DNA of 64,000 bases from Blastocystis sp. Blastoise (Eukaryota; Protista; Bigyra: Opalinata). Below, in pieces: positions 46,706 through 50,780 of the stretch (position 1 is the stretch's first letter; each line of letters opens with the position of its first letter). The position numbers were made by a program, and so were the translations under genes. The notes under the pieces are model-generated. The model was not told where the DNA came from. It did no database searches and worked only from the letters and a program-made list of their open reading frames with translations. The stretch is from the NCBI GenBank assembly GCA_039096225.1, contig JBBPEB010000007.1, positions 186,001-250,000 on the forward strand, written 5' to 3'.

Positions 46706-47254
46706 ATGAAGATTTATTTCTTACTACTCTTTTTGTTATTTATCACAGAATGTGTTGCTATTCGTCGTTCAGTTCTACATACTTCAGAAAATATATTTCG
46801 TAGAGAATCTCAAAACAAGAATTTCTACACAGAAAAGGACGTATTATCGGATTTCACAAGATATACAAGTACATTATTCACAAATATTTCTTTAGATTAT
46901 CAAAAAGAAGAGCTTGATGTATGCTACAAGGTTTAGATATCACTTATATTGTATAGATACTGAATAATAAACAATCAAGAAAACTGACTTCATCAAATTC
47001 TCATTCTTTTGGACAATTTATTACAGTTATAGATCACTCTACAGACATAGCAAACTTATATGATGCTATTAGAAAACATGAAACGCTATTCAAAATGCAT
47101 TTCATCGGAAAATCAGATAGGATCGCTATCATTGAAGGTTACACTGACGATATAGAATCCTATCTTCTCAATAATCATTATATTCAAAAATATATAGAGA
47201 TACCACCTCTTTCAAAAGTATTTTTTTTGATTTATTTATAATGATAATAATAAT

Positions 47255-47293
<39 letters not shown>

Positions 47294-47442
47294 TTAGTAA
47301 CACATTTTCTTCAGATTCATTTAATGGGAATATTACTCTAATTTCATATTTTTCTTCCTTATTAAATATAAAGGATACTATAAAAACATCTGTTGATACG
47401 ATTCAATCATTTATTAATATATCCTGATTTATTTAAGTAATT

Positions 47443-47479
<37 letters not shown>

Positions 47480-47895
47480 ATGTATTTTATTGTATTTGCT
47501 ATTGTAATTATTATTATTATTTATATATATCCTTAATAATATACTCTTTGAGTTCATTATATTTCCCTTCATTTTCTTCTCTTTCTAATGAACTTCATCA
47601 ATATATTACTCTATTTTCCAATAATAATCGCGGGAATATCGTAAACTTATTAAAAGATATATATATTAAAAAACAATCATTTTCAAATTCTTTACATATC
47701 CTTATTATATATAATAATGATAATTATTGTTCGTATTATAAAAATGTATTATATATATATATATATTCCTTTATTTTTTACATCCCTATATATCCATGAC
47801 TTATGAAGGCTTTCATTTAAAAATAACTACAGATTCCCACGGGATTGTTCCTATATTAGCCTATTTGTCCTTACAACCTTATATTATGTCTATTA

Positions 47896-47985
<90 letters not shown>

Positions 47986-48067
47986 ATATATATAGGTAGA
48001 TATGAGCCAATAACCTTTGTTGATGAAATGAAAGAATTAAATAATAATGAAATCGATATAGATAAAC

Positions 48068-48118
<51 letters not shown>

Positions 48119-48242
48119 TATATAATTATATAATTATTTATTATATATATATATATGTAGGAAGACGTTTAAATGATCGTGTAAAGTATATAATAACCGC
48201 GGGACAAACGATAAAATCTGAAATCTATGAAAGAGGACTCAG

Positions 48243-48282
<40 letters not shown>

Positions 48283-48318
48283 GATGGAACTGGTCAAGTA
48301 ATTTGTGTTGCAGATACA

Positions 48319-48368
<50 letters not shown>

Positions 48369-50780
48369 TGTGGACACGAATCATTGTTTATTTTTTGATC
48401 CGTTAAATGACGTTATATATGGGAACACAAATCCAAATACGAAACATAGAAAAGTTATTCTGTATATATATTTATATTACATTTACTTATATATATATAA
48501 ATATACATATAACTATTTATATATATAGATATACTGGATATGCAGATACCACTGAAAGAATGTATAATAACCACGGGACTCATGTTTCTGGGACTGCAGT
48601 TGGATATACCGACGGGGATCAATTTAAATATAACGGTGTCGCATATGGTGCCAAGTTATCTATGTTTGATATAGAAGATTCCCACGGGAATTTACTTATT
48701 CCTAATAATCTTCAAGAATATTATCAATTAGAGTATATATATATAAATAATCTAGTAGTATGTTATTTTTCTTTATATATATAGATATACATTAGGTGTT
48801 CGTATATTATCGAATAGTTGGGGAAAGAAAGAAAGTAATATATATACAGAAGATACTGCTTCTACTGATGAATATATTTATAATCATCCTGATATGGTTA
48901 TTATTTTTGCTGCTGCCAATTCTGGTGCTTCTGGGTATATAAATATATATATATTATTATTATTATTATTATAAAGACCTGGTCACATTAGTACGTTAGC
49001 TATTGGTAAGAATACTATTTCAGTTGGTTCAACGTATAATAGCGGTGAAGTTATTACAGAAGCTAAGTATATATATATACAAATATATATATATATATAT
49101 ATAGTGCATTTAATTATGTTCTTCCATCTTCTTCTTATGGAAATACTCTTGATAATCGAATAAAGCCTGATATATATACAGTCGGATCTCTTCGTTCTGC
49201 TGTCAGTAACTCAGAATGTGAAATTTCCAATAAACAAGGAACATATCCATATATATACATATACATATATATTGATTATATATTTTTTTTCATGTTTCTA
49301 ATTATTATTTTCATTTATTTTTTAAGGAATATATATATATATATATATATATTCCTTAATAGACTACGTCTATGGCGACTCCCGCCATTGCTGGCGCCAT
49401 TGCTATTATTCGACAGTATCTTATGGAGGGATATTATCCTGAAGGTATATATATATATAATATAAATGAATAAACATACAAATATATACATAAGTATTTA
49501 ATTTAAATATATAAAATATGAATTATATAAATAGAAATCTTTATATATTTCAAATTATATATATTTACATATATATTAATAGTAATATTAAACAATAATA
49601 TATATAGGTATTCCATCTTCTTCTTCTTCTCTTTCTCCTTCTGCTTCTCTATTAAAAGCCATGATTATTCACTCGGCAGTACCTCTAAAAGGAAAAGCCA
49701 CAACATATACGGTGAGTCCCGCGGTTATTTCATTTAATAAAACACCGAATTCTATGGGAGGATGGGGACGAGCACAATTAGATAGGTAATTATATATATA
49801 GTAATAATACTTATATATATAATAAAAATAGTATATATAATAATAATATATATAATATATATATAGAGTATTATTTCTTGCTAATTATACGCCATTTAAT
49901 TTATTTCTTGAGGATCAAATTGTTGGAAGAGAAAATGGAACTATTTTGTATACATTAGATATTGATGTATATATATATATATATATATAATATAATTAAA
50001 TATAAAAAGAATTCTTTAAATATAAATATAACATAAATCTATATAAATATAAAGAAATAACATTAAATATATATATATATATATATATATATAGCCTTCT
50101 TATGATTTACGTGTTACGCTCACGTGGACAGACCCCCCTGCGTCATCTCTATCAACCAATAATCTTATTAATGATTTAGATTTATATATCATTATACAAA
50201 ATAATACTCTCTATAGCAATTCGTATATATATATTTATATATATATATATACAATTATCTTTAAATGATTATAATATATATTTACTATAGATATAGTCAC
50301 TATTACAATTATATATAATATATAATACATATTTATTTATATAATTTATATATAGATTACCTTATTTTGATCGTAATAATAATATTGAAACAATTTCTAT
50401 TTTTGCAAATGATTTAAATAAATATATAAATAATAATTCGAATCATGTTAATATAACTATTTATGTAAAAGCATTTATGCTTTCTACTTCTTCACAAGTA
50501 TATAAATATATATATAATAATAAGTATAATAATAATATATTTTCATTAATTTTAAACTTCAATAAGTTATCTGTTCATATTATGTATATATTATATATTA
50601 TAATAATAATACTATACTATTATATAGTCTTACTCAATAGTATTAACAGGTAGATTTGAAAATGGATTTCAGCATTATACTGAACAAACTGAAATTCTAG
50701 ATTTCTCTTATTCTTCAACACTATTTTCTTCTATTCTTCTTATTCTTCTATCCTTTGCTTTCATTTTATTTTCATTCTAG
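46706..50780 (+). CDS. Subtilisin-like S8 serine protease (KP-43/Tag-like) with signal peptide and hydrophobic C-terminus (possible GPI anchor); three AT-AC introns and one GC-AG intron
   Basis: [14 protein letters not shown] (Asp), HGTHVSGT (His), [29 protein letters not shown] (Ser; formed only by AT-AC splicing), [21 protein letters not shown]; ends [17 protein letters not shown]. Confidence 0.92.
47419..47544 (+). other. AT-AC (U12-type) intron 1 of the subtilisin gene
   Basis: 5' ATATCCTG, branch ATCCTTAAT 47529-47537, 3' ATAC; phase 0; removal keeps the frame. Confidence 0.85.
47696..47781 (+). other. AT-AC (U12-type) intron 2 of the subtilisin gene
   Basis: 5' ATATCCTT, branch-like TTCCTTTAT 47766-47774, 3' TTAC; phase 1; joins ORF 47548 to ORF 47796 in frame ([12 protein letters not shown]). 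Confidence 0.85.
49243..49367 (+). other. AT-AC (U12-type) intron 3 of the subtilisin gene
   Basis: 5' ATATCCAT, branch TTCCTTAAT 49352-49360, 3' CTAC; phase 2; removal gives GGA AC|G TCT ATG = GTSM. Confidence 0.92.

Follow-up and report, generated by a model that had tools for sequence, protein, structure and literature searches.

AT-AC introns of minor-spliceosome type in a Blastocystis subtilase gene, and a difference in intron class between lineages of the genus

An S8 subtilase gene (KP-43/TagC-like; 46706–50780, forward strand) in a 64,000-nt stretch of the genome of the tortoise isolate Blastocystis sp. Blastoise, hereafter the window, is interrupted by three AT-AC segments that are very likely real minor (U12-type) introns. 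In other Blastocystis lineages, an AT-AC intron is already present at another site of the same gene (position 16). As a whole, the findings are probably best explained by minor-spliceosome introns that have been present in the gene since the ancestor of the genus, with conversion and loss.

The gene model comprises 19 exons encoding 839 aa and 18 introns, of which 14 are GT-AG, one is GC-AG and three are AT-AC, and a frame check revealed no internal stops. AT-AC intron 1 (gene intron 3; 47419–47544, 126 nt, phase 0) has the donor ATATCCTG and the branch motif TCCTTAAT, AT-AC intron 2 (gene intron 4; 47696–47781, 86 nt, phase 1) has ATATCCTT and TCCTTTAT, and AT-AC intron 3 (gene intron 13; 49243–49367, 125 nt, phase 2) has the weak donor ATATCCAT and again TCCTTAAT. 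All three are on the forward strand, begin with ATATCC and have exactly 5 nt between the branch motif and the terminal AC. The donors fit the U12 consensus RTATCC(T), with that of intron 3 departing from it at +7, and the branch motifs, located near the 3' end and complementary to U12, are of the TCCTTRAY type (TCCTTAAT twice and TCCTTTAT once, with one mismatch). The ATATCCA form of the intron 3 donor is a minority form, found in 7 of 44 introns called in the genome, and this counts against our explanation. The branch region of intron 1 (47527–47544) also reads as a perfect U12 donor (ATATCCTTA), a trait seen in 4 of the 44 called introns, and in principle a new minor intron could result if such a unit were duplicated in tandem. 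A perfect 38-nt palindrome (49322–49359, forward strand) encloses the branch site of intron 3 (intron folding z −3.63). Its second arm mimics the U12 pairing sequence, and its internal AAGG was seen in only one of 44 other called introns.

Retention of any single AT-AC intron truncates the protein early (stop at aa 206, 288 or 663), and removal restores the conserved reading frame. This evidence is strongest for intron 3, which interrupts the Thr codon of the GTSMATP motif. No in-frame GT/GC-AG substitute for intron 1 was found in the sequence, and those available for introns 2 and 3 have poor donors only. The strict AT-AC pattern was found three times in the window (mean 0.16, maximum 4 in 200 triplet shuffles), with no further AT-AC intron in the window outside the protease gene. 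The GC content of the three introns is 8–9%, compared with 17–30% in the upstream exon flanks; across the window, GC ranges from 15 to 29%. In a sequencing run that is probably RNA, 0.45 of the words of the region were present, where 0.485 would be expected if the gene were fully spliced and 0.59 if the AT-AC introns were retained, a weak and indirect indication. An earlier sequence-only reading had placed three AT-AC introns here, in phases 0, 1 and 2, and assigned them to the U12 type. The motifs and the frame confirm the former, and the donors, branch sites, frame and minor snRNA genes (see below) agree with the latter.

The predicted protein includes a signal peptide, a prodomain, a catalytic domain, a C-terminal beta-domain and a hydrophobic C-terminal anchor. 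As judged from its hydrophobic ends, it is predicted to be secreted and anchored at the C-terminus. It matched PF00082 at 119.8 bits (cut-off 21.8) and carries the DTG, HGTH and GTSM catalytic motifs of the S8 family. The closest solved structure is KP-43 (1wmd, E 1e-37), and the alignment spans the WTDPP and NDLDL motifs of the KP-43 C-terminal beta-domain. The Asp/His/Ser triad, SNSWG, FAAAN and the C-terminal WTDPP beta-domain are shared with KP-43/SubHal-type subtilases and protist TagC-like S8 proteins (PF00082; PDB 1wmd, 5fax), but the Blastocystis form is eukaryotic and has a signal peptide, a longer prodomain, a hydrophobic C-terminal anchor (predicted) and 18 introns. The GC-AG intron (48320–48367, forward strand), a major intron within the catalytic Asp motif (DT/G), passed the frame check and is used in the deposited model as well. 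The position of GT-AG intron 14 (49445–49607, phase 1), after GYYP-x, is common to Ectocarpus (L099) and both other Blastocystis, and this is therefore probably an old stramenopile intron. Recent transfer from bacteria was considered and is not supported: in a tree of weak support the protein falls among eukaryote-like S8s (82%), and intron 14 is also present in Ectocarpus. Searches were run with single exons or with the deposited protein, KAK8810483.1, exons being joined only for the frame check. A word search with one exon gave no match, and no S8 paralogue was found in this genome, where the protease was the sole S8 match.

KAK8810483.1 (Blastocystis sp. Blastoise) contains a sequence identical to exon 10, and its junctions coincide with those of the 19-exon model at introns 5–12 and 14–18. 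It starts at Met 47796, 3' of AT-AC intron 2, and lacks 258 N-terminal residues as well as 13 residues before the nucleophile. The latter implies a GC-AG junction at 49199–49362 (forward strand), the sole listed alternative that removes 13 aa, giving GSLRSA-TTSMATP. The context of this donor, GCTGTC, differs from that of the donors of the protease gene. A Gly precedes TSM in 98 of 98 homologues and is restored by the AT-AC junction only, and the spacing from PD to the motif is at least 24 in all but one measured homologue; the AT-AC junction gives 25, KAK8810483.1 gives 12. The AT-AC junction also restores a Cys seven residues before the Gly that is found in 42 of 99 sequences. Because of the conflict with the homologues over the invariant Gly and the PD spacing, the active-site junction of KAK8810483.1 was rejected, and from these sequence comparisons we judge the GC-AG junction to be a prediction error.

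The deposited model is the public annotation and was produced by an RNA-guided pipeline (PMC12129017); its use of junctions other than the AT-AC ones counts against our explanation. The genome is also 77% AT, and the motif scan does give false positives. However, for the deposited model to be correct, with Met 47796 as the start, the GC-AG junction in use and the AT-AC motifs due to chance or unused, the protease would have to be without a signal peptide and most of its prodomain, and to have dropped a segment found in all homologues and broken the invariant Gly through a donor unlike the others in the gene. Upstream exon 2 also aligns weakly with the prodomain of the relatives. We regard this as very improbable. 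The sequence-only reading had held that AT-AC intron 3 is needed to form GTSMATP, in line with the homologues, and that GT-AG predictors would annotate the enzyme as dead. The public model is indeed wrong at the N-terminus and active site, but it keeps the catalytic Ser.

The genome assembly (33.34 Mb, 34 contigs) was scanned for the snRNAs of the minor spliceosome. U6atac (63.8 bits) and U11 (62.9 bits) exceeded the Rfam cut-offs. U12 (46.8 bits, E 5e-7; cut-off 53) and a U4atac candidate (29.7 bits) fell below theirs, and both are full length with the key motifs. The U4atac candidate includes a 12-bp perfect complement to the U6atac of the same genome, and the branch-binding stretch of U12 is complementary to TTTCCTTAC. 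The genome encodes U11, U12 and U6atac, and probably U4atac. The sequence-only reading had proposed to look for these four snRNAs and for pairing of U12 with the branch motif; genes for the four, U4atac as a probable one, and the U12 complementarity were found. The U6atac gene (L002:1501–1617, reverse strand; G000:C21:544821–544937) reads AGCCGAGA, where the Rfam consensus and the human gene have AAAGGAGA. [quoted passage not shown] A second candidate U6atac copy proved to be U6; the two genes are approximately 6.5 kb apart on the same strand (G000:C21:544821–551586).

The abundance of AT-AC introns in Blastocystis is already known. In ST1, 346 U12 introns are spread over 319 genes (PMC5608401), and the statement in the sequence-only reading that minor introns have been reported in the genus agrees with the literature on ST1 and ST7 (PMC5608401; PMC10639083); they are unmentioned in the genome paper of the tortoise isolate (PMC12129017). 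Strict genome-wide patterns with a spacing of 5, 4 or 6–8 gave 62, 38 and 135 matches, respectively, and reversed-pattern controls gave 39, 55 and 80. As antisense TLDc repeats also fit the pattern, the raw numbers of motif matches were not taken as numbers of introns. A 77-nt repeated match, antisense in a large TLDc-domain gene family (L040:1537–1613 and many places in C1–C4) and directly adjoined by PF07534, is a systematic false positive of such scans. Tests for GC contrast and an open frame, applied to 90 retrieved loci, left 44 distinct introns, and extrapolation from these gives an estimate of approximately 130–200 AT-AC introns genome-wide. The tortoise introns share with those of ST1 and ST7 (PMC5608401; PMC10639083) the AT-AC dominance, the ATATCC donor and a TCCTTAAY-type branch site. 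Also common to them are a phase 0 share of about 50% (23 of the 44 called introns; 49% in ST1, PMC10639083), hundreds of introns per genome, some multi-U12 genes and all four minor snRNAs. In contrast, the tortoise introns are 50–240 nt long and rich in (TA)n where those of ST1 are about 40 nt, the branch sites mostly end in T (TCCTTAAT/TCCTTTAT), and GT-AG U12 introns are nearly absent from the genome.

Of 39 anchor loci, 8 had another AT-AC intron on the same strand no more than 1.5 kb away (0.5–1.4 expected). These eight reduce to four independent cases, and two further cases were found besides. Three related membrane-protein genes (L086, L088 and L089; G000:C4) contain two AT-AC introns each, apparently at common positions, which suggests that multi-U12 genes spread by gene duplication too. 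Clustering of U12 introns was reported in all 21 U12-containing genomes studied (PMC7367187). With pairing frequent and the genus rich in AT-AC introns, three in the protease gene is a typical tail case, and not special to this gene as had been supposed. Control of the protease by minor splicing, also put forward in the sequence-only reading, fares no better. Removal of all three introns would be required for an intact protein, and intron 3 combines a weak donor with a branch site buried in a hairpin. However, multi-AT-AC genes are common in this genome, in the relatives a U12 intron persists only at a different site, and U12 introns are reported not to be excised slowly enough for a meaningful effect on expression (PMC7367187). 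A rate-limiting switch specific to the protease appears improbable, and its regulation by minor splicing is speculation.

Orthologues were found in ST7 (L097, CBK21403) and in a second Blastocystis, represented by a genomic contig (L185) and an mRNA contig (L186), that is 60–65% identical to ST7. In a tree, the ST7 and L185 proteins group with KAK8810483.1 at 89%. Metagenome scans gave nothing with KAK8810483.1 and, with the alignment, only a second ST7 isolate. For ST7, too, the deposited protein (CBK21403, 349 aa) is cut short at both ends, and a 10-intron model yields 770 aa (L097:5313–7950). The comparison covers these two relatives, both of intron-poorer lineages, with 7–10 introns in the gene versus 18 in the tortoise isolate. 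Positions 10, 14, 16 and 17 of the tortoise gene are common to both orthologues, position 11 is also found in ST7, and both have an intron one codon off position 6. At position 16 the tortoise isolate has a phase 0 GT-AG intron (49967–50094, forward strand), whereas the intron of ST7 (L097:7437–7490) and that of L185 (1997–2035) are AT-AC, each with a donor and a branch site of canonical form. The 39-nt AT-AC intron of L185 is exactly absent from the mRNA contig. Comparison of intron positions across S8 relatives, as the sequence-only reading had advised, yielded these orthologues and the class switch at position 16 but no paralogues.

A phase 1 GT-AG intron is also present in the prodomain of ST7 (L097:5893–5923) and L185 (562–589), in the latter within approximately three codons of the position of AT-AC intron 2. 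The introns of the relatives are 27 and 37 residues before the LA/LT anchor of the prodomain, and AT-AC intron 2 is 24 residues before it. Although the prodomain alignment alone is not statistically significant, it seems likely that these introns are homologous, and class switches would then have been reciprocal. Conversion is assumed to occur almost only from minor to major (PMC10639083), and the ancestor of the genus therefore probably had a U12 intron at position 16. Other systems with clustered U12 introns and U12-to-U2 conversion (PMC7367187; PMC10639083) likewise have several U12 introns per gene and orthologous sites that differ in class, but in the present case introns of a single gene probably switched class in both directions, between lineages of the same genus.

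Recent gain of U12 introns, as suggested in the sequence-only reading, probably does not apply to intron 2. In the case of introns 1 and 3 gain is possible, and one or both may be real U12 introns born de novo in the tortoise lineage, an origin that deserves serious consideration but is not the one we expect. There is no intron at GT/SM in ST7, in L185 or in seven outgroup genes (from Triparma, Ectocarpus, Cyclotella, Phaeothamnion, Guillardia and Plasmodiophora), but the outgroup genes are intron-poor. Given the few introns in the relatives and the loss from ST7 of 11 of 12 ST1 minor introns (PMC10639083), absence may reflect loss, and gain and loss are inseparable for intron 3. No counterpart of intron 1 was found in ST7 or L185, where the prodomain alignment is weak. 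This intron lies within a prodomain stretch 30–40 residues longer than in the relatives (a segment of 117 aa, versus 78–87 in the relatives and a median of 90 in the outgroups), and exons 3 and 4, each ending at an AT-AC donor, are weakly alike. Intron 1 may have arisen when, long ago, exon 3 was duplicated in tandem together with its AT-AC intron, but this exon-plus-intron duplication is a weak lead: the similarity of the exons has a p of 0.04–0.25, introns 1 and 2 differ in phase, and no common sequence or target-site duplication links the introns. The phase 0 share of about half would also fit de novo origin, having been read in ST1 as possible recent gain (PMC10639083). A transposon-type origin found no support, as none of the 44 introns had a flanking duplication.

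A broader proposal, which we find rather doubtful, is that turnover of minor introns is ongoing in Blastocystis, and that this gene records both reciprocal U12/U2 switches and de novo births of AT-AC introns in the tortoise lineage, one in the catalytic-serine motif and one perhaps by exon-plus-intron duplication. Physarum, with its expansion of minor introns (PMC10639083), is likewise a lineage with suspected minor-intron gain, but Blastocystis has far fewer introns and an insertion signature was not seen.

Under the explanation that we favour, presence since the ancestor with conversion and loss, U11 would bind the ATATCC donor and U12 would pair with the TCCTT(A/T)AT branch site. U6atac/U4atac would form the catalytic core, and the AC that follows the branch motif after 5 nt would be the 3' end. 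Splicing at the three tortoise junctions, which we infer together with the direction of conversion and the homology of intron 2, would produce an mRNA for a secreted, C-terminally anchored KP-43-like subtilase, from a gene within the large AT-AC-dominated minor-intron set of Blastocystis. The gene of the genus ancestor would have had at least one and probably two U12 introns. The tortoise lineage would have converted intron 16 to GT-AG, and ST7-like lineages would probably have converted another U12 intron and lost, or never had, the rest.

This analysis adds a corrected gene model and, with mRNA support in a relative, a U12/U2 class switch within the genus. For the sole S8 subtilase found in this genome, the public model is in error at both the N-terminus and the active site, and the models at many of the other estimated AT-AC sites may be wrong as well. 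In published surveys, evidence of new minor introns outside Physarum is very scarce, and Blastocystis has been named as an open case that needs more genomes (PMC10639083). With four U12 positions in three Blastocystis lineages, one of these positions with DNA/mRNA proof of AT-AC splicing in a relative, the protease gene offers a compact test of gain versus loss and conversion.
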